34,382 nucleotides of DNA from Pelomyxa schiedti (taxonomy: Eukaryota; Protista; Evosea), in the NCBI GenBank assembly GCA_020536535.1, contig JAHLWZ010000311.1, forward strand, positions 1 to 34,382. Reading direction: 5' to 3'. A model generated the notes under the pieces. That model did not search any database. It was not told where the DNA came from and saw only the letters and a list, made by a program, of their open reading frames with translations. A program made the translations under genes and the position numbers. How positions within the stretch are numbered: the first letter of the stretch is position 1; each line of letters begins with the position of its first letter. This document shows, in pieces, positions 3,057 through 27,899 of the stretch.

Positions 3057-6000
3057 ATGTCACTGTCATCTCCATCACCTTCTTCGTACCAGTATGTTGT
3101 CGGTGTCGATGTTGCTGAGCAGACCGTATCCGAGGTCAGGTTCCTGGCCTCCCTACCCACTCCCTCGCAGCCCGCATCAGTGGCCAGCAACGCAACCAGC
3201 AGTAATTGTGGGACAGGCGAGGGCAACGTAAACGTCGAGGGGTGGCGACGAGTGGCACAATGGCAGTGCCCGACGTCGCTGTGCGCCTGCGCGCCCTCCC
3301 ATAATTGCACAGCCGCCGCGAACGGCACCGGTGGGAGCGCAGCCGCGAACTGTAGCAATGGAGGCTGCGCAGCCGGAATTGTGGGATATTACGCTTGGGG
3401 AGGGACTGGTTATTGGGACGGGGACCAACCGGGGAATGAAACTTCTGCTTTAGAGAGGTATGAAACTTTGGTTTTTTTCTTTGTTTAATTGTTAAATATG
3501 TTTTGGTGTTGTTTTAGATTGTTACCAATTATTATGTTGATTGAGGGTTCTTAGAAGAAGATGCTTGTGTAAAGCTGAGTGTACTATGAATGTGGGTGCA
3601 GAAGTTGTTTATGAATTCCTTCAGGAATACAACAATATGCCGCTATATGACTGCACCATAAGTGAGGCAAGGAGCGCATCTAAATATTTCTTTGCTTCTG
3701 ACCTGTGCTAAGATGGACGTCACGGAGCAATATGACTATCTAAATTCTCTTTTACTCATAGAGCTGGCAACTCCCTTTTCCATGCAATTGTTTGACTCCA
3801 AGCCCAAAAGCTCCACTGTATTCCTTCGCTGTTGTCACATCAATTCACCAACCAGCACTTATGTTGTTGGTTTTCGATCAGTTTGCAGTAACCAAGTACA
3901 TAAACTTATGGTGGAAATTGAACTTACATAGCTCTAGGAAGAAACTCCCCCTTTCATTGTGGCCCCTTCTGGATGGGTGAGCGATTTTTTTCTTAGTTAT
4001 TTTTATTCACGCTAATACTGGTACAGGTTGTCCAGAGTTGTAACACAGGCTGTAAACTTACATTAATAACACATGTATATATTCTGGATCCAAAGTTTTC
4101 TCAAGATGTAAGTAGCCTAAATATTCAACAATTCCTAATTATCCGCATACAAAAAACGAAAAATAGATAGTCTTGAAGAGCAGCCTGTTAAGTAGAAGGA
4201 TATTTGAGTGCCTTTACTTTTACCTCGCAGCTTCAGTTGATCTATTTATCCTTGCAGTCGACATTTAACCTGTTCACAGAAGACTCTCCCACATTATTCA
4301 TTCATACGAGATTCTGTTCTCATAGAGAGAGAAGTTTACAGTTCCCTACTATCCACAGCAGTTGAGTCTGACTGGCAAGTTGCTTATTCCGATCATGGTA
4401 CGAGTCCTTTTGAAAGACCTGGCTAACTCCCCCTTTTTCCAAAGGTGTTGAAATTTTATTTACGGCTCAAGGTGATCAACCACTAGTAGCTTTCAAGGGT
4501 GGATTTCGGTGCAACGCTAGTGCCGACTCTGTATTAGATTTTATTATGACAGTGTGCCTTCACGTTTTTATGTCAGTGCTGATTACAAATTCACAGCAAC
4601 AAGCGAAATGGGATATGCTGTCATCCAAAATTGAGATGGTTGACAAGTTTGACAATATAGTTGTATTCAGTAAGCAATCTGTTTCTGTTGGTCCATGTAT
4701 GCTCCTTTCTACTGAAAAATCAGCTTCATGACATGGGTTTTTTTTAAGTCTCTTCTAGCGATTCTGTGACTTTTTGGGTTACAAAGAGAGAACCAGATGG
4801 AGTGTGTTCCAATTGTCTAGCCAATTTGAATTCACACTTTTTTTTGAAATCCAGGTTGGACTGATATTTTTTAAAACCCTCGCAGATAGCTCACCAAGTG
4901 CTCTTCAATTTCTTCCTTCAGGCATAGGTCTACTAGGTTGTTGTGCCTGAATAATGTTCGTTAGGTGCCTTTGTTTACCCCCTTGGCCCCAGTTGCTGTT
5001 ATTTGAAGTACGTTTCAATAGTGCAACATTCTTCTGTCCCACTTGACATTGAGGAATTCAAGCCATTTTGTTCCATTCTATCTGCTGTTATCTTGGGAAT
5101 GCAGAATATCATCTCGGTTAGCACGCCCTCTAAGAGGGCATATTTGTGAATAACCATCTCTTCAGATGCCATCCAATACAGCAATGATTACTGATACCTC
5201 TACATTACACAACCAAGTGATGCAAAACTGGTTTTCCGGGATTCAATCAGCTATCAATGACAAGTAGCTATATCTTTTTTCTTAACTCGTATAACTCTTT
5301 CAGTAATATAAGCACTGCACTTGGGAAGAGGCCAAACACCTTGAATCTGAATTCACCCGTTCTGTTGTATGTCGTTGACAACAATTCAGTTTCTGAGCAG
5401 GTTGTACATTACGGAGTGAAAAAAATACTTACGCCAATTCCAGATGTTTGCCCAATACCCATCATTACTTAATTCATTCCGAGGGATGCCAAATATTCCC
5501 CACAGACTCTTTTTGTTCTTGATGCGAAGTGCACCAATTACCCCTCCTGCCCCAAAGAGACGATTCATCCAAAATTCAACCCCAAGTCTGAACCAACTTG
5601 ACAGCATTTCAGCGGCCACTCCCAGATTTTCTGAGAGGGATCAGATAAATTCCTTGGCCTTTTCCGGCCCGGCATCAAAACTCTCCAGCCCACCAGTATC
5701 CTCACCTACTGTTACACAACCTTCGCATGAGCAGTTGCTCTTTCCTCTCCCCGATTCACAATTGCCCTTGGCTGCTCCAGATTCACTATTGCTCTCATCT
5801 CTCTCAGATTCTCTATTGCTCAGGATACTTGTGTACCTTCCTCTGCAAAGTTTAGTCAATATTTCTAGGGTACACTTCCTCACTTTCCTTTCTTCACTTA
5901 ATGATTCCAAGGTTTGCAGACGTCTTCTAACTTTGACCCACGATCAGCTGATTTGGAAGAACTTGTACAGCCAAACTTTTTCATACATGCCGTCGTATTC

Positions 6001-7719: not shown

Positions 7720-9254
7720 TTAGTAATTGCAGTCAGTACCTTGGGATTGTGTTGCGGGATTGCCGGAAGTTTGTTGGTGGTATCCGTGGGCAGAGGCAGG
7801 AAGGAGGGGCAGTTCCTCCCACAGTTCTTCTCCAGTTTGGGTTTGCACTGAGGTAATCTGTTGCGGCTCCGGGGCATCACTAATATCCAGCTCGGGCACA
7901 TTCTCCTGCTGATCCAGTAGACCCGTGTTTACTTGTATGACAATCGCGTCCTTCTCAGAGAAAACCGGTTCGGTCTGCGTAAAGTCGAGTACATCCGCGT
8001 TGGAGATTGGCACTTCACCAGCTGGTTCCTCTTGCTTCGACTCCGGATTCACATTCTCTTCTGTGTGTCCCTCAGTAGCCGGTGGGGAGTGATTGAGCGT
8101 GGGTACATAAGCAGCTTCCGTGGTGAGTACCACGCTGTCTGAGGGTAATTCCAGGGTGTCATCGAGATGTTGTGGTGGTTGTGGTGTATCGGCGGCGGTT
8201 ACTACTACCTCAGGGATGAGTGTGCCCACTCCGCTTGCAGAGTTCTCTCTTGTATCTGTCTGATTTCTGTGCCTATTCCTATGCCTGTGGCGGTGGCTGT
8301 GCTTGTGGGGCTCCTCTGTTTCTTCTTCTCCCGGGTCAACGCGACTGGTGTTGCTAAGACTCAAAGAGGCTCCCAAGGCAGAAGAGCCTACTGTGTTCAT
8401 CAATGAAGTTGATCCAGTCAGGGGGTAATCACCACTCTCACTTTCGCATCGTATGGTGTTGCTACTGCTACTGCTACTACTACTACCACTTCTAGTTGTA
8501 CAGCTATTAGCATTGCTACTACTACTACACAGTGATGTTGTGGAGGCCGTCCCCACAAGCAGCCGTCGAACATCCTCCTCCCCCTCAATCATCCCACAAT
8601 CCCCTCCTCCTCCTCCTCCTCCTCCTCCTGCTCCAGCCCCAGCTCCCATGAATTGCGCTTCTACTACTCCTAACCCCCCAGCACCTGTGCTGCCAGTCAA
8701 TTCAACCGCCCCCCGCCACGATGATAATGATGATGGCGACGGTGACCCCACCAATTTCCGCTGGCCGCCCTGGTCGTAGTTGGCGTCGGCGTCGGCGGCA
8801 GCACGAGCACAAGCACTACTACTACTATCGTCGGCACGCACCACCACCAACTCATCATCGTGATGGATCGTCGTCGTCGTCGCCGTCGTATGCTCGTCCG
8901 ATTTCTCATCAGCAGCAGCAGTGGTGGCAGCGGTGCCATAACAATCACTGCGGTGGCTTCCTCCTCCTCCTCCGCCGCCGCTGCTGGTGACGGTGGTGGC
9001 TGCACATGGCGATGGGTCGCCGACAGGCGCGGCGACGGCGAGGCGGCTGTGGTGGGAGCGGGGAGGGCCGCGCCCGTGGTGGCTGTGGTGACGGTGGCCG
9101 TGGAGCACCTTGGACACAAGCGCCTTGATTGTGTTCTTGTGCTTATGGAGCTGCTGTGATGGTTTGTCGTTGTTTGTTCCTGGGGCGGTATCCGCGGTTG
9201 TTGGTGTTGGTGTTGGTGGTTGGTGGGGGTGGTGCTCATGCTGTCTGAGTTCAT
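7720..9254 (-). CDS. Intronless low-complexity (His/Gly/Ser/Thr/Glu-rich), probably disordered protein; needs a frameshift near its start
   Basis: The frame is open from 9387 to 7720 but has no ATG until ~8650. ATGs at 9254/9239 are in another frame; one extra C in the C5 run (9225-9229) joins them. Confidence 0.6.
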
Positions 9255-17002: not shown

Positions 17003-20000
17003 ATGAGCGACAAACAAGGTAAGGATTTATTGTCCCTCTGTACGCCGCGCCGCGTGGAAGATCTTCCGCCTAGATCTTCTCTCGTTGTTTTTTCGCATGT
17101 GGATCTTTCTTTACTTGTGCAGGTGCTACTGGCCGCGCGCCACCTCAAGTTGGGGAGTTGTGGGGAGATTATGTGTTGCGCAGACTTGTGGGAAGCGGTG
17201 CTTTTGGGAGTGTATGGGAAGCCACGTGCACAAAGTCCTCGGTGGCGAGCCCTGTTGCTGTGAAGTTTGTTAATCGCGCAGTGATGGATGCCATGACTAA
17301 AAAGGTACACTTGCTTTTCGTGATAGAGTACCGGTGCTCATTATTGTTTCTTGGACAGTACTTGGATCAGGAAATAAGAGTGCTGGAGATGGTTGATCAC
17401 CCAAATATAATCAAACTTTACGAGACAAAGGTTTTTATGAAAGCGTTGTGCCTCTTTCTCATAATGTATAAGATAATAGGTGATTACCATATCATCGCCA
17501 CTGAATTTTGCAGTGGAGGATCCCTGAAAGATTACTTATCTAATTTTGGTGCAATTCCTGAAGAGAAAATGAGAACCTGGGCCTCCCAATTAGGTTTGAT
17601 CTACTTTGTTTTGTTTTTGAAAAATCAAAACCAAGTAATTCCCTAGTCAGTGCTGTGTGTTATTTGAGAAAAAGGCAAATCTCTCATCGTGATATAAAAC
17701 CAGCAAATGTTTACCTCTACAATGTTCTTCCTTCTTTTTCAACCTAGAATAGATTCTTCTTGCCTCAAGAGACCCAAATGCACCTGTGAAATGTACAACA
17801 CTTTCCTTTTACAAATCCTTTGTTTAATATCAACGTAGTTTGCGATTTCGTAAGTGACAGTTTCACTTGTGGAAGTTTGTTTCTTTATAATAGATTTCTA
17901 GGGTTTTGCTCGCAGTTATTGCCAGACTGCTCCAATGCAATCGGCACTTGGTTGTTCCCTTAATTCTGTTCTTCTTTCTAATGTTTTTAGGCACACCACT
18001 TTATCGGGCACCTGAAATTCCTTTCCAGCAATATGGTCCGTCTGTTGATTTGTGGAGCCTCGGACTAGTGCTTCATGAGGCAAGCAATTCTTACATACTG
18101 AAGAACTTGTTTTAACAAATCAACAACAGATGTTGACTGGACGACCAGCTATTCCTGCAACCACCCTTCAGCAACTGGAGGACATTCTTAGCGATCCGTC
18201 GGAAATAGAGCTCCCACCCTGTTCTCAACCTTGTGCTGATCTCCTTTCAGGATTACTGAAAAAGTTTGTTATCCAGTTATCCACACTTTGTCTGACTTTA
18301 TGTAGGAATCCTGACCAAAGAATATCATATGAGCAGTTAATGCGCCACCCTTTTGTGAAAATTGCCACAGCAATTGTTGTTCTACCTTGGATGTCACCTA
18401 ATCGCCCTCCGCAGTTTATTTCAGTCCAAATAACACCCGATTTATTGTCCAAGTGCTCTACAATAGGAGACCTTTTAGTATTTATCCCCGTTTTAGGAAT
18501 AATCTAATTTGCAAACCAGGCCGAAATCGTGAAGAAAGCAGGAGCAACTGGTGTTCCACATCAGGCGTTTATCCTTAACAGTGGGGACTCAGATTTCCTG
18601 GATTCGAATGAGTCTATTAGTGATCAGACATCTAAGGTAGACAACTTGTGCCTGAAATCAGTCTTACTTCATTAGCTTCTACGCAACGATTTATTGGTGT
18701 TTCCCGTCTGTTTGAGTGACTGCACTTTCCCTGAAAATGTAGCAACTGGACAACCGGATAATTCTATTGGTACCCTGCACGCCAGTTTATTTTCCCTGTT
18801 GACGATTGTTAAAAAGTTGTTTCTCCATGCAGTCCCGGCCTGCCTAAGGAAATAGCTCAAATAGAGTTACAATTCCTTGGAAAGAAAGGGTTAGTTCAGG
18901 TATGATCTCATATAAGCTTTTACGTGGACCAACAAAACAAAAGAGTAGAGCATCCCTTGCAGTTAACGAGTACTACAATGCAATTTCCTTTCACGAACCC
19001 CAGCAGCTTATTTTGAAGGGAATTGTTTGTTTGTGGTCCTTTCTCCGAAATGCAATGAAGTTGCCCCTCTTTGAAAGACCTCTCTTACTCTTTCCAGGCA
19101 ATTGAATGAATCATTCTATCGTCAGGTGGACTCTAATAGGGTTACATTTAATCAGACAATATCCAAATGCACCCAAATTTTAGATGAGGTTTGCATCTAC
19201 CGGTGCAATAGTTTAATTCATTTTGCACAAGGCACAAACTATGCCACTACCAGTAGAGATCCGTAACCTGCGTACTTACCGCACTGCTATTGATTTGATA
19301 CTTATGAATAGTATTCCTCTTGACCTGGAAAAATTTCCTTTGCTATCTGGTAAAAGCCACCTTTAACAACGTAAACCAACTTGTTACTTTGTAGAAGAGA
19401 GTGTTCGGGCATACAACACCGCACGTCAACAATTTCAGTTGACGTACAAGAAATGTGAGAATGCCACCCCAACGACTAGCGTCAGTACTACAACTAGCAA
19501 TGCTACCATGAAAAATATTACGGAGCAGTCTATATTAGATGTTGAAGAGTGCCACGGCGTTATTATGCAGATGGGCGCCACCTCGACCAATATAAACCGC
19601 GAGTTTGTTTCATGCATGCAAAGTAGACGTCCACTCCTGTTTCATTTTTTTAATCTCTCAAAGAAAGCCTGGAGTTTGATGACTTTCTTCGCCGAGTCAA
19701 ATCTCGCCAACCATTCAGGACTGAGGATGCAGTAGCCATGTTGAGTGCACTTGATCAATCTGTTGGCATCATTTCTAGCTGTGCAAGTGAAATTAGCAAG
19801 TCTCTGAAGCTGTCCTTCAAAACTTGTGTATGCATTACTTAACTGCGCATTAACTTACAGAAATTTTAGGTCCAATTGTGGAAGCGCTTTGTCAGCCTCA
19901 CCCAACTACTTTTGGCATATCACAATTGGCACAAGTCTGTCCATGAAAGTTGATAATTTCTCGCACTACTTTCAACTAACCCCTCTTGAGTTGTGGATAC

Positions 20001-22287: not shown

Positions 22288-24706
22288 ATGAGCGGGTACG
22301 GATACGGGTACCCCCTACGGCTACTACCTCCCGTCGCAGCAACAACCAGATCCCTATGGCGGGCGGCGCCAGCAGCCGCGGCAGCCGGCCCAGCGCCCCC
22401 AGCAGCAGCAGCCCCCTCCCTCTCGCCTCCCACCACCACGCGTGGTGTTCTCCTCCACCCCAGCCCCTCCTCCTCCTCCTCCTTCTTCTACCTCCACCGC
22501 GTACCCAAGAACATCTACAATCACGACCACGCCACGGTCCCCGGTGTCGCCCTCGCCCTCGCCGTCGCCCCGGCCCGTAGCCACCCGTGCCGCCACCACC
22601 GCGGCCTCGCCCGCCCTGGTGGCCTCCCCCCGCTGTTCCCCGCCCCCGCCTCGCTTGATGCCTCTCTCTCTGTCTCCCCAGCCCACGCCCTCGCCCACGC
22701 CCTCGGCCACGGCCACGGCCACGGCGCCGCCCTCTACCTCGACCTCCGCGACCACCAGCACGAGCACCAGCACCAGCACGAGCACGAGCACGAGGACGCC
22801 GGGCACGCCCACGTCGTTGGCCCCGACGGTTTGTTTTTCTTTATCTTATTATATATGAAATCGAGATTGTTATGTGTGTGGTTTACTACATGCATGCCAG
22901 CGTTGTAATATTATCTCGTAAAACTTATTAACAAACTTGTTTGTTTTGTGTTTTGTAGGCCTCCTCGAAGCCTTGGCAAGGAGTTTGTTCATTTCCTGGA
23001 TGCACGGAATTGGCTTATGTGGACCCTGATACTTACATTGTGTCCAAATATTGTTCTAAATCGCATGCTGATGCTGCAGCTCTGTACTCTGATGGGTGTG
23101 TGATCACCACCTTTGATGAAGAAAATTGGTCTAAATGCTCCTTCCTTGTATTATACTCTCACCCTGAACACTTTTTGTTTTAGTAATAATAAGCCTTCGG
23201 GAACGTGCATGTTTGGAACTTGCCAAGAGCCGGTTTGGATAGACGCCAATGGTGAACCATCGCAATTCTGCTCCAGAAGACACAGGGATAGCTTTACCAA
23301 GTAATTACCATTTCCTTCATTCCCTTGTAACCTTGCAAAGAGTCCGAGAGAAGACTCCTTCCAGAGGTAAATAAATTACATTCATCTCCCAACAAGATAA
23401 TAGTTTCTTATATAGCGTCAATGCACTGTATTTTCCCTGGTTGTTCAAATCGCTGCTGGGTAGACCCAATTTCAATGGTTCCTTCACAGTTTTGCTCTCG
23501 ACGCCACCGTGATGAGTACAAGGAAGACTATTGCTCTGATGAAGACGAGGACGACACTCCGGGAAATTCTTTCACAACAGGTAATCAAATCCAAAGTCGG
23601 CAGACCAGTGTAACCAAATCTCCCAAGATCGTGTGTGCAGATTCCCCAATTGCCCTAAGCACTGTTACGTTGACCCTTGTGGAATAGTTTCTGATTTTTG
23701 TTCTCGTTCACACAGAGATGCAATGCAAGTGCGATTTAAAATCTTACAGTGCTTGTAATCACAGTCATATAGGAAACCGGGCGTGTTGAATTCCTCGCAC
23801 CAACATCGGCGGAGTACAAAAGTGTCATTGCACAGTTCGCACTGAAATGGGAAAAAGAAGGGCAACCACTGCATGTCATTTCCATATCTAAAGTATATCC
23901 TCCAAGGTATACACAAGGAAACAATAAGACTACTTCAGTGATCTCTGTTTCTTTTCTTTTTGTTTTAGTTGGATCTTTTCGCGTTACATGTCATACCGTG
24001 ACAGGATCATTCCTCTTGGCTCGTGGGAGACTCCCGGAAATGAGAAGGTAGAATATAAACTCTTTGAAATCTCACTTTTAATAGAGGAGGTTTCATGGAA
24101 CTTGCATTTTATGTGATCTTGGTATCAAGAAGAGCAACTCAACACCGTGTGCCCAGCCAGCATGTTCTATCTGCGGAATTATCCGAAATGGTACGGCAGA
24201 CTCTTCTTCTCAGATGTCTAACTTTGCCTGCTTTCAGGCTTCAAAGTAGGCATGACTCCTCCCGAGGCTCGTGCCTTCCAGAGATTTGGCATGGGACTGT
24301 ACTTTACAAGCACCTCAGGAAAAGCAAACGATTACAGTTCTCCCTCAGAAAGGCGAACACAATCCGGAGGGTATGCTTCTTCCTTTTTCCATTCCGGAAA
24401 TCTCACAGTTCACAAAAACAAACCACAGACTGAGGCGAGCAATGCTACTCTGCAAAGTTATTGTTGGAAATCCCCATCTCACCAAAGTAAATGCACCCGC
24501 ACTCGCTGGCCCTCCTCCCGGCTGTCACTCTGGTGTGTGCAGTAGCCTTTTCTCTACCCGATTCTAACAAGTACACATAAACAGTTGTGGGACAAACCGG
24601 CGTTGACCTGAACTATGATGAAGTAGTTATCTACGACGAACGAGCAGCCATCCCAGCCTACCTTCTATGGTACACGATTCCACCCGATGACCAACAAGAC
24701 AGCTAG
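22288..24706 (+). CDS. PARP-fold ADP-ribosyltransferase with a Pro/Thr-rich N-terminus and three C-C-C-H putative zinc fingers
   Basis: GNEKRRFHGT, RFGMGLYFTSTSGKANDY, AMLLCKVIVG, LNYDEVVIYDERAAIPAYLLWY give an H-Y-E triad. TAG 24704-24706. A frameshift at C5 (22311-22315) is needed to use ATG 22288. Confidence 0.85.
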
Positions 24707-24800
24707 AACTCTGATTCCTTCCTCAATCAACCAGCCACCATACTTTTTAATCAGCACCATCACAAATCAGACTTACACGAAACACCCAACACAAACCACA

Positions 24801-26033
24801 ATGAAGGTAGTACACACATTGTAAATACCCCAACACAAACCACAATTTTTGCCTTGTCTACAATTCCATTTCATATTGAGTTGGTTTAAACTGTCTTGTT
24901 GACAACATATACAGTACTGCACACAGAGTGAGGCAACATATGTTGACGAGACATTCTTCAACAGTCTTGGGTATACATTGGACCAATTGATGGAATTGGC
25001 GGGCCTCGCCGTGGCCACTGTGGTACACATGGAATTCCCGCCGTCGACACACCCTAGGGTCCTCGTCATTTCCGGCCCTGGAAGTATGCTTCTTGCCAAC
25101 ATGCATGATGATGCTGTATTATATAGGCTTTTTTTTTTGTTGGATGATCAGTATACTACTATGTTTAATTTATTTTATGTCATCATGGACTAGAATGGGG
25201 ATAGATAATATGTGATAATTTGGGCTGTAATAGATAATGGAGGTGATGGTCTTGTGTGTGCACGGCATTTGCAGTACTTTGGATACGCTCCTGCTGTTTG
25301 GTATCTCTTTCTAATTTTAAATGTATTCCCGCCTTTACTTTTCTTTCAGGTATCCCAAGCCCGGCAATGCTCCAACTTTGCAGGTTAGTTTCTCTCAGAG
25401 CAACAACGAATTTAACAAAACAAAACTAACAACGCACATAAGAACCTTGTCAAGCAACTTGGGAATCATCACATCCCCGTAATGGCTGAACAACCTGGTC
25501 CCTTGACTTCATTTGACTTGATTGTGGACGCAATTTTCGGGTACAGTTTCAATCCTCCAGTCCGCGGTATTTTTGCCCAAATCATTCAGGTACGATATGT
25601 ATCTAAATGCCTTTTTTTCTGAATCATTCAGGAAGTGAATTCCAGCAGCTTACCCATCCTGAGTGTTGATGTACCTTCAGGCTGGAATATAGACACAGGT
25701 AGCACACAAATCTCGAAACAAGAACTAACAATTCCAGGGGAGCATCAAACTGGGATACGAGCCCCTACTGCTGTGATTTCGTTGTCATGTCCAAAGAAGT
25801 GCATGGAGGGATACACAGGAATACATTACCTTGGCGGCAGATTTGTACCAAAGTGTGTAGAAATGCTTTGTTCTTTTCTGTGTTGTGTTGTGTTTGGTTT
25901 GATGCGTGCGTTGTTGAATGGCGAAATATTTGTATTATAGAACTTATTTTCTGAATACAGAGTTCTTTCTGATGAAATGGGCCTAGACCTGCCGCAGTAT
26001 CCTGGACATAGCCAAGTTGTGAAATTACAGTAG
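24801..26033 (+). CDS. NAXE: NAD(P)HX epimerase (YjeF_N domain, eukaryotic NAXE/AIBP type)
   Basis: [15 protein letters not shown]|[57 protein letters not shown]. 6-nt first coding exon (ATGAAG); TAG 26031-26033. Confidence 0.95.
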
Positions 26034-26118
26034 GATGAACTTGTAGTGATTCCCCGAATAAGACAATACAATAAGCAAAGATTCTTTGTTGCCAGTCTCA
26101 TCAGGGCCAAAACGGGTT

Positions 26119-27697
26119 TCATACTTTAGATGCCGGCAATTGACGCAATAGGTTGTCTATTGCACTGGTAGCAGTAGCCATGCGTTCTTCATGTGAACCT
26201 CTTACAAGTATCCATGTTCTGCCGGTATTTGTGAGCTCCTCAATCAGTGCTTTTTGCATCCAGTGCCGCTCCACATTATCATCATCCCTGGTTCCATCCT
26301 GCACAAAAGGAATATCATCTGAGGTCAGTAGGTATAAATCAGGACGCCTCCTTGTTTGTGCAATGTGGTCCACACGAGCACAGCGGCGTCTCTCCATGTA
26401 TCTCATGTGCCAAACACATGTGGCCAGTGCATCTGTGTCACAGATAAGTACGCCATTCCTTGCTGTGCGGGCAAGCTCATCTTCCCTCCTGGACTGTTCT
26501 TGTGCAATGTGAACAAACTCCCGGGAAGACCAGGAATCAGAGTATTCCACAAGCATTCTTTTTGGTAGTAGTGGGTCCCCAGTTGTTGTAGAACTCTGTG
26601 TGGCTGCGGCAGCTGCTGCAGACCACTTAATGTTGCAGTACTCCCGGCCGTACTCCTCAACACAATGTGTGTCATAGTGAGCCGCCAAGGCGCGGGCCAA
26701 AGTGGATGAACCGGTGCTGCCGGCCCCAAGAACTACAACTCTCTTCACGTAGAAGGCTCTCATAACGGGGTGCATCATGTGCATGTATTGTAGTGGGTTA
26801 CTACGTACAAGGGTTCCGGAGCATGGAACATTGTAGCGGCATTTGTCAACAAGTACATGGGTAGTATTTGGTCCTATATATGCAGCATACTGGTCCCCAT
26901 AAGACTCGGAGGTAAATACCGCACTAGGTTGAAATCCAAGTACCTGCAATGAAAAAGAAACTTTAATATTACTCGAAAGCGTTTTAAAGAAAAAGTCCAC
27001 ATGGAAGTTTGCTGTACAAAGATAAGCAACCTAAAACAAAAGCCAAAATACATAATAAAAAGAATAACCCATGAGAATAACATTAAGACCAACATACAAC
27101 AACTAATCCAAATAAATAAATGACAAATATTTATTTATTTGGTTGTTGTCACCCATAATAGTAAATACACAGCAGCAACAAGTGGTTAAGTACCTGCACT
27201 GTCCTGGTGGCCCAGGCACGTGACTCGTTTGGGATGTCGTCGGGGACCACGAGCACGGCGGCGGCGGGGTGGGCCTCGCGCATGCACGCGGCGCGGACGG
27301 CGGCGGGCACGAGGGCCTCCTGCGAGGGGTGCACGCACACCAGCACGTACACGCGGTCGCACAGCGACGTGGCCACGTCCACCAGGAAGTGGTGGCCCAT
27401 GTGGGGCGGCAGGAACTTGCCGACCACGACGCCGCTGGGGTAGCGCCGCAGGGGCCGCTGCCCCAGGGGCGGGCCCTCCTCCCCGTCCCACTCCAGGCTG
27501 CGCTGCGGGAGGAGCTGCGGGGGGGGTGGCACCGCCGGGAGGGCGTGGGCCTGCGGGCGCGGCGGCGGGGGGTCCGCCTGGACTGGGGGGTGCTGCGGCT
27601 GCGGGTACGTGGCTGGGCTACACAGCAGTAAGGGGCTCTTCTCGGCGCTGTGCCCATCGGCAGGTCGTACGTCGTGTCCTTCAGCACAACGAGCCAT
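26119..27697 (-). CDS. nadR: Bacterial-type NadR-like protein (HIGH-family nucleotidyltransferase + P-loop ribosylnicotinamide-kinase-like domain, no HTH); two exons, 27697-27194 and 26943-26119
   Basis: VVGKFLPPHMGH (HxGH), VFTSESYG, VPCSGTLVR, KRVVVLGAGSTGSSTLARALA, EYGREY, LICDTDA, DIPFVQDGTR. 250-nt GT-AG intron at 27193-26944. Confidence 0.88.
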
Positions 27698-27899
27698 CAA
27701 AGGTCTTTCTTTGAAAAAAGCCAGAAAGTGTCCACTAAAACTCACATTATTGTTGTGTGTGTTAAGAAGTGTAATAGAGAACATGGAAGAGGAAGTAGAA
27801 AGATAAAACCATGTTCTCTATTACACTTCCTAACACAACAATAGAGTTTCAATTAACATCCAAGGATCACAAGAATAAGCTTAAACTACCTGCATTAGT

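Follow-up and report, generated by a model that had tools for sequence, protein, structure and literature searches.

In the bacterial pnuC–nadR system, represented by the solved NadR proteins of H. influenzae (PDB 1LW7) and L. lactis (6GYE), a nicotinamide mononucleotide (NMN) adenylyltransferase (NMNAT) domain of the HIGH type is followed by an AAA_28 kinase domain. The same arrangement is found in a gene of Pelomyxa schiedti, an anaerobic amoeba of the Archamoebae. This NadR-like gene lies beside genes for a PARP-family ADP-ribosyltransferase (ART) and a eukaryote-type NAD(P)HX epimerase (NAXE, YjeF_N family) at positions 22288–27697 of a 34,382-bp scaffold, which was covered whole and is referred to below as the window; all three genes contain introns. 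The trio had been predicted to form a co-selected module that consumes, repairs and replenishes nicotinamide adenine dinucleotide (NAD+), assembled partly by gene transfer (the original prediction). Our analysis shows that the NadR-like gene is a transfer from bacteria, as had been proposed. The adjacency itself is probably the chance placement of three independently useful, separately transcribed genes in a compact genome.

Relative to the bacterial system, the Pelomyxa gene is nuclear, carries an intron, a proline-rich extension and a low-complexity insert, and has no pnuC counterpart that we could find in the genome. The trifunctional NadR of enterobacteria has an N-terminal helix-turn-helix (HTH) repressor domain, which the Pelomyxa protein lacks. 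The phage NARP3 pathway, composed of a PnuC-like protein and the NadR-like enzyme Bas30_86, also places a NadR-type enzyme outside its bacterial context and rebuilds NAD+ after depletion (PMC13464706). NARP3 is a transporter–enzyme pair directed against bacterial immunity, whereas the Pelomyxa protein has neither a detected transporter nor a shown link to an NAD-depleting defence. NadRh of M. tuberculosis (Rv0212c) is another HTH-less NadR homologue. After refolding it was inactive both as a kinase and as an NMNAT, and it lacks a PnuC partner (PMC3944813); almost all relatives of the Pelomyxa protein, by contrast, are pnuC-linked. We found no literature description of a bifunctional, bacterial NadR-type salvage enzyme in a eukaryotic nucleus.

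Yeast POF1 consists of the adenylyltransferase domain alone, whereas the Pelomyxa protein retains the AAA_28 kinase as a fusion and resembles bacterial sequences far more closely. POF1 is a eukaryotic cytidylyltransferase-like NMNAT working alongside the canonical ones (PMC13191266, PMC7072712). For NAXE the reference is the eukaryotic NAXE/AIBP–NAXD system, with structures of mouse AIBP (PDB 2DG2) and yeast YNL200C (1JZT). In Pelomyxa, too, NAXE is a YjeF_N protein that stands alone and contains the GPGNNGGDG loop; it differs in having no organellar presequence and in the location of NAXD on another contig, and is otherwise unremarkable. The ART resembles the tankyrases (PARP5a/5b) in its H-Y-E triad and in the absence of a PARP1-type helical regulatory domain. 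Ankyrin and SAM domains, which tankyrases possess, are absent, and the protein has instead a four-cysteine insert after the HGT motif and four N-terminal cysteine modules.

The published P. schiedti assembly comprises 52.4 Mb in 5337 scaffolds with 19,876 predicted proteins (PMC8887013) and is 82% complete. Exon models for the three genes were built from the sequence, with GT..AG at the junctions; family searches for NAXE and the NadR-like gene were run exon by exon, and those for the ART also used the public full-length protein KAH3764115.1. The NadR-like gene is on the minus strand and begins with an ATG at 27697. Exon 1 (27697–27194) encodes a proline-rich N-terminal extension of ~85 residues followed by the NMNAT motif GKFLPPHMGHH (GxFxPxHxGH), and matches CTP_transf_like (PF01467, 26 bits), TIGR00125 and TIGR01526. 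Exon 2 (26943–26119) encodes the C-terminal part of the NMNAT domain with its second motif, CSGTLVR ((I/C)SxTxxR), and the ribosylnicotinamide-kinase-type AAA_28 domain, which matches PF13521 with 109 bits over the full profile and TIGR01526 with 134 bits. This exon also contains a low-complexity insert of ~20 residues. The fusion of NMNAT and AAA_28 in one polypeptide requires splicing of the 250-nt intron between the exons (27193–26944), and the resulting junction is collinear with the bacterial proteins.

The only sequence matches of the NadR-like protein in the PDB are solved NadR structures, to which the second domain aligns. The best of them is 9X6F (E 6e-24), deposited as a nicotinamide-nucleotide adenylyltransferase, which may be the phage enzyme Bas30_86. 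Pfam and TIGR searches found no HTH family in the protein, the first ~85 residues of which are the proline-rich segment; the nearest bacterial clade, with proteins of 320–335 residues, is also HTH-less. The Pelomyxa sequence keeps 67 of the 72 columns that are conserved in this clade (14/14 in exon 1, 53/58 in exon 2). The five changed columns include the P-loop glutamate and two residues of the RDGE stretch.

The P-loop of the Pelomyxa protein reads GAGSTGSST, which does not fit the canonical Walker A motif GxxxxGK[ST] and has glycine in place of the clade-conserved glutamate. Solved NadR proteins have GxESSGK[ST], and most of the HTH-less clade has GAESTGTTT. At the position of the Walker lysine, the pnuC-linked bacterial members of this clade (e.g. 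locus L026:5004-6720) mostly carry threonine, with lysine in ~10 and serine in 3, and the loss of this lysine is not peculiar to the amoeba. The genome context of the HTH-less clade argues that it salvages nicotinamide riboside as a whole, and the coexistence of a noncanonical P-loop with conserved pnuC linkage suggests that such a loop is compatible with this salvage.

Relatives of the NadR-like protein were sought among 5.8 billion proteins. The best 120 BLASTP matches are all at ≤54% identity and 320–350 residues, every one with an organism name is bacterial, and the two best matches without an organism name sit behind pnuC in bacterial operons. When aligned, the closest relatives are 52–59% identical to the Pelomyxa sequence. 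Those placed in species genomes belong to Armatimonadota, Patescibacteria, Acidobacteriota, Verrucomicrobiota, Chloroflexota and others, with one locus in Mycobacteriales. In 73 of 80 bacterial loci of the HTH-less clade pnuC lies directly upstream, and genes for NrtR, NadV, NadE, PncA, PncB and ADP-ribosylglycohydrolase recur nearby; the operon of one top match has the order NadE–NrtR–ADP-ribosylglycohydrolase–PncA–PnuC–NadR. A family beside the bacterial NadR loci that at first suggested a ‘TIR response regulator’ proved on inspection to be a cluster of generic receiver domains.

In a phylogenetic tree the NadR-like protein nests among bacteria on a long branch, and its Atlas neighbours are also bacterial. 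Together with the relatives found by sequence search, these placements bear out the proposed acquisition by transfer. The nearest sequences in the tree are from Armatimonadota, but no sister has branch support and we do not assign a donor phylum. A viral donor was rejected, viral relatives being ≤41% identical as compared with 52–59% for the bacterial ones. Metagenome searches found no relative above 49% identity, and neither these nor the searches of proteins and genomes yielded a NadR orthologue from a eukaryote. Transfer of NAXE or the ART in the same operon as NadR was also rejected: exon-wise tblastn searches found no YjeF_N or ART in the flanks of 160 NadR loci (80 from genomes and 80 from metagenomes), and the NAXE is of eukaryotic type.

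The NadR-like intron (26944–27193, minus strand, GT..AG) is bounded by an 11-bp direct repeat, AAGTACCTGCA, located at 26938–26948 and 27188–27198, which supplies both splice sites. It separates codons that are contiguous in the bacterial homologues, with no codon lost. This arrangement looks like a recent intron gain with target-site duplication in the transferred gene. A repeated introner element was considered and rejected, as no second copy is present in the genome. A short way upstream of the NadR-like start codon, at 27758–27837, is an inverted repeat with 29-nt arms that are 97% complementary and a 22-nt loop; an in-frame ATG at 27784 lies within it.

A separate 1811-bp contig of the assembly (C2257, positions 1–1811) is 96% identical to 24672–26504 of the window and links the ART, NAXE and NadR-like genes. 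We considered whether it represents a second NAXE–NadR-like cluster and rejected this; the contig is the other haplotype of this one locus and not independent evidence for linkage. Comparison of the two haplotypes, with NAXE codons indexed across exon borders, gives five synonymous and two non-synonymous differences in the NadR-like gene and eight and three in NAXE. The total of 13 to 5 has a binomial P of 3e-5 against an expectation of 25% synonymous changes. Introns differ by 4.1% between the haplotypes and coding sequence by 1.6–1.8%, a roughly 2.5-fold excess. The synonymous excess and the higher intron divergence indicate that NAXE and the NadR-like gene are both under constraint. Two alleles of C2257, at 25817 and 25991, occur in an assembled RNA contig (run X4, described below), so both haplotypes are expressed.

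We take the gene to descend from a bacterial pnuC–nadR operon for nicotinamide riboside salvage, of which nadR alone was captured. The captured gene then gained its spliceosomal intron, with the 11-bp duplication, its proline-rich N-terminus and its low-complexity insert, and is maintained by purifying selection. In the cytosol, the protein is predicted to convert NMN, and perhaps nicotinamide riboside, into NAD+, beside the products of the canonical NMNAT-like genes of the amoeba. Such genes, with the GSFNP...H signature, are found on three other contigs (C133, C310 and C215). The idea that the NadR-like protein is the sole NMNAT was rejected on this ground, and its gene is therefore an addition and not the only route to NAD+. 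According to a published metabolic reconstruction, P. schiedti does not synthesize nucleotides de novo but obtains them by scavenging (PMC10579272), which fits the presence of a salvage enzyme.

The remainder of the pathway is scattered and in part not detected. One NAD synthase exon is on contig C187. A search of the 52-Mb assembly found no match to PnuC (PF04973), and a six-frame search found none to the NAPRTase family (NAMPT/NAPRT); both negatives are weak evidence, coming from six-frame, exon-by-exon searches of an assembly that is 82% complete.

The NAXE gene occupies 24801–26033 on the plus strand, from the ATG at 24801 to the TAG at 26031–26033. Its eight exons (24801–24806, 24915–25083, 25234–25300, 25350–25383, 25443–25589, 25632–25698, 25738–25852 and 25961–26033) total 678 nt and 225 codons. 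The 225-codon model has no presequence. The protein matches YjeF_N (PF03853) with 71.6 bits and stands alone, with no YjeF_C fused to it; a Carb_kinase/NAXD gene, for the NAD(P)HX dehydratase, is on contig C365. The GPGNNGGDG loop is intact and is formed across the junction of exons 2 and 3. Exon 2 matches mouse AIBP with E 6.7e-10 and also yeast YNL200C, these being the best solved matches. The gene is thus a typical eukaryotic one for this epimerase, inherited vertically, with the activity of its product predicted from the family match.

The ART gene (22288–24706, plus strand) has 12 exons with GT..AG at every junction, an ATG at 22288 and a TAG at 24704–24706. Exons 1–6 are at 22288–22828, 22959–23095, 23184–23300, 23341–23366, 23416–23580 and 23628–23728, and exons 7–12 at 23773–23906, 23969–24047, 24085–24190, 24238–24370, 24429–24532 and 24585–24706. 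Exon 1 (541 nt) is GC-rich and encodes a low-complexity N-terminus rich in Pro, Ser, Thr and Gln. Its reading frame is off by one base relative to exons 2–12 (sum 1224 nt), near a run of C at 22311–22315. In a low-depth DNA contig, 22310 is followed by two additional C that would bring the ATG at 22288 into frame, and the length of the C-run in the assembly appears to be wrong. The public protein for this gene, KAH3764115.1 (P0121; 555 residues), is annotated as ‘C2H2 zinc finger protein’. It agrees with exons 3–12, but its reading of exon 1 is frame-shifted and it omits cysteine module one.

Searches of Pfam and the PDB with single ART exons returned almost nothing, and the full-length public protein was needed for the family assignment. 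KAH3764115.1 matches PARP (PF00644) with 40–44 bits, against a cut-off of 26.7; with the matches to PF03853 and to CTP_transf_like, AAA_28 and TIGR01526 given above, this confirms all three gene identities as first proposed. The N-terminal region contains four cysteine-rich modules of the form C-x4-C-x15-17-C-x3-H, encoded at 22959–23728 by exons 2, 3, 5 and 6, a stretch that also holds a 26-nt micro-exon. The module recurs in three relatives of the ART (P0123, P0125 and P0127). It has no Pfam family match, and only insignificant hints to the EsV-1-7 motif were seen.

The catalytic domain is encoded at 23773–24706, with the H-Y-E histidine in exon 9, the tyrosine in exon 10 and the glutamate in exon 12. 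The triad residues (in HGT, GxYF and NYDEVV, respectively) are invariant in a seven-member alignment, as are four cysteines inserted directly after the HGT motif. An AlphaFold model of the ART (pLDDT 80, pTM 0.82) has its best Foldseek matches in the catalytic domains of tankyrases 1 and 2 (E 5e-15, TM 0.70–0.75). A word search found seven relatives, one of them from a sponge. Although the PARP family of P. schiedti occupies at least ~30 places in the genome, no paralogue matches ART exon 9 or exon 10. The ART is the only P. schiedti member detected of a sparse eukaryotic H-Y-E PARP subfamily that combines a tankyrase-like fold with the four-cysteine insert and N-terminal cysteine modules. It probably ADP-ribosylates some target.

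Four loci with ART relatives could be inspected. In two of them, on unrelated eukaryote-like contigs (L090:1426-3887 and L171:1237-11629), genes for NADAR, an ADP-ribosyl hydrolase, adjoin PARP, which may reflect a pairing of writer and eraser for eukaryotic NADARs. The role of these proteins has been called unclear (PMC11125620). At L171, segments 5777–5869 and 8874–8975 beside the NADAR genes match the ART cysteine module weakly (E 0.03 and 7e-4), which hints that writer and eraser may share the module. On contig C571 of P. schiedti itself (17182–19286), PARP and NADAR are matched 1.4 kb apart, the latter weakly. No NAXE or NadR is present beside the ART relatives, which are distant, at the four loci.

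The gaps of 94 bp and 85 bp given in the original prediction are confirmed: the first separates the ART stop from the NAXE start (24707–24800) and the second the NAXE stop from the convergent NadR-like stop (26034–26118). DNA contigs of two sequencing runs span ART to NAXE and NAXE to NadR-like. Around the trio, F-box/WD40 and protein kinase are the sole Pfam matches among 20 flanking open reading frames.

Evidence for expression comes from two single-cell RNA runs (X3 and X4) of one study, available as assembled contigs without strand information and compared with 5601 bases of the window. All three genes are present in the RNA contigs of both runs. Spliced contigs confirm 12 introns, seven in the ART and five in NAXE, with exact GT..AG joints; the ART introns confirmed run from 23580/23628 to 24532/24585. 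In these two runs no contig covers ART introns 1–4, the first two NAXE introns, the NadR-like intron or NadR-like exon 1. The ART contigs end at 24821 (X3) and 24815 (X4), 110–115 nt past the stop codon. The ART 3′ untranslated end (24707–24821) thus passes the start codon and first splice donor of NAXE, and the promoter and 5′ end of NAXE must sit within it.

In both runs a single RNA contig spans the spliced NAXE exons, the 85-bp gap and NadR-like exon 2 up to 26883 or 26899. In all three genes coverage reaches ~800–1000 nt inward from the 3′ end, the pattern that such a library should give, and we therefore read these contigs as overlapping convergent transcripts; the alternative is a long NAXE 3′ untranslated region (UTR). 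Co-transcription of NAXE and the NadR-like gene is impossible in this convergent orientation. Taken together, the DNA contigs, RNA contigs and second haplotype indicate that the adjacency is not an assembly artefact and that the bacterial-looking NadR-like gene is not contamination.

We infer that the adjacency of the three genes probably has no function of its own. The NAXD gene, the NMNAT-like genes and the NAD synthase are all on other contigs, so the locus does not contain the interdependent steps of the pathway. The cluster lacks the partners that are biochemically required, NAXD for hydrate repair and a transporter for salvage. The original prediction had held that a module would be refuted by lack of linkage in relatives, together with a PARP family large enough to make the adjacency expected and with uncorrelated expression. 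The refutation is only partial: no linkage was found in the distant relatives checked, and the PARP family is large, but it is too small to make the adjacency expected.

Several observations weigh against a chance arrangement and against the activities assumed for its members. Gene order was shuffled at random for 19,876 genes, with 31–80 PARP-type and 10–25 NAD synthesis or repair genes and with contig breaks ignored. Two adjacent NAD synthesis or repair genes occur in 0.4–3% of shuffles; such a pair is flanked by a PARP gene in 2e-5 to 3e-4, and any three consecutive genes of the combined set occur in 1.4e-4 to 3e-3. The random-order test called for by the original prediction thus makes the triple nominally unlikely (2e-5 to 3e-3), the values being nominal in that they were computed post hoc for a cluster picked from ~250,000 windows, with ‘NAD-related’ an elastic category. 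All three genes appear to be single-copy and no close paralogue of the ART was detected, so the size of the PARP family alone does not explain the adjacency. The very short gaps and overlapping transcripts could couple regulation. Clustering of NAD and ADP-ribose genes also has precedent, as operons of the bacterial NadR clade mix NAD salvage with ADP-ribosylglycohydrolase and ART relatives cluster with NADAR. On the side of enzymology, the kinase P-loop has neither the Walker lysine nor the clade-conserved glutamate, and the refolded mycobacterial NadR homologue was inactive in vitro (PMC3944813), which leaves the assumed activities insecure.

A second explanation, which we regard as possible but unlikely, is that the locus is a co-selected island. 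The PARP would drain NAD+ in stress or defence, NAXE would clear NAD(P)H hydrates and the captured NadR would rebuild NAD+, with the genes kept together by, for example, a chromatin domain or their overlapping transcripts. The low random-order probability (2e-5 to 3e-3, with the post hoc and elastic choices just noted counting against its use here), the 94- and 85-bp gaps and the overlap of transcript ends are in keeping with this, as is the expression of the three single-copy genes in the same single cells. Operons of the donor type join NadR-like, PnuC, PncA, NrtR and ADP-ribosylglycohydrolase genes, and phage NadR-like enzymes restore NAD+ after immune depletion (PMC13464706). However, no conservation of the linkage was found, the searches having yielded no eukaryotic NadR orthologue and only four loci with distant ART relatives to compare. 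Hydrate repair by NAXE requires NAXD, whose gene is unlinked; canonical NMNAT-like genes are present elsewhere; and NAXE has a housekeeping role and is not known to be connected with ADP-ribosylation. Of the module first proposed, its partial assembly by transfer therefore stands for NadR and its improbability stands nominally, but for co-selection the comparative tests were negative or empty.

A stronger version of the island, in which the transferred NadR was kept beside the PARP and NAXE genes because of joint regulation and rebuilds locally the NAD+ drained by ADP-ribosylation in stress or in conflict with viruses or symbionts, we hold to be rather doubtful. If true, a eukaryote would possess its own equivalent of the bacterial salvage operons under NrtR control and of the pathways by which phages reconstitute NAD. 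A functional cluster would also be a rare eukaryotic metabolic island built around a transferred gene.

It is improbable that NAXE and the NadR-like gene alone are coupled through their overlapping 3′ ends, so that transcription of one modulates the other, with the ART as an unrelated neighbour. The unbroken RNA contigs that run from the NAXE exons through the 85-bp gap into NadR-like exon 2 in two cells are compatible with such coupling, and both genes act on the pyridine-nucleotide pool. These contigs are unstranded, however, and the overlap may be the short 3′-UTR overlap that is usual in compact genomes. Adjacent pairs from this single pathway appear in the 0.4–3% of shuffles given above, and would appear far oftener over all pathways; moreover, the pair is not conserved at any of the 160 NadR loci.

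Bacterial contamination or a chimeric join from single-cell amplification, which the amplified single cells used for assembly, the many prokaryotic symbionts of the amoeba (PMC8887013, PMC10579272) and the bacterial nearest relatives of the NadR-like gene could suggest, is hardly credible, given the GT..AG intron exactly between codons contiguous in bacteria, the eukaryote-style low-complexity additions, the location on contigs that also carry amoeba genes rich in introns, both in two DNA runs and in C2257, the RNA contigs that join the gene to spliced NAXE exons, and an identity of ≤59% to any bacterial sequence found.

The reading that we favour is thus a bacterial nadR gene captured on its own, which probably came to lie by chance beside two genes with which it shares a cofactor. 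A domesticated bacterial NadR with a freshly gained intron in an amoeba nucleus is a clean case of transfer from bacteria to a eukaryote. The transfer bears on the NAD+ supply of an amoeba that is anaerobic, scavenges its nucleotides and harbours prokaryotic symbionts.

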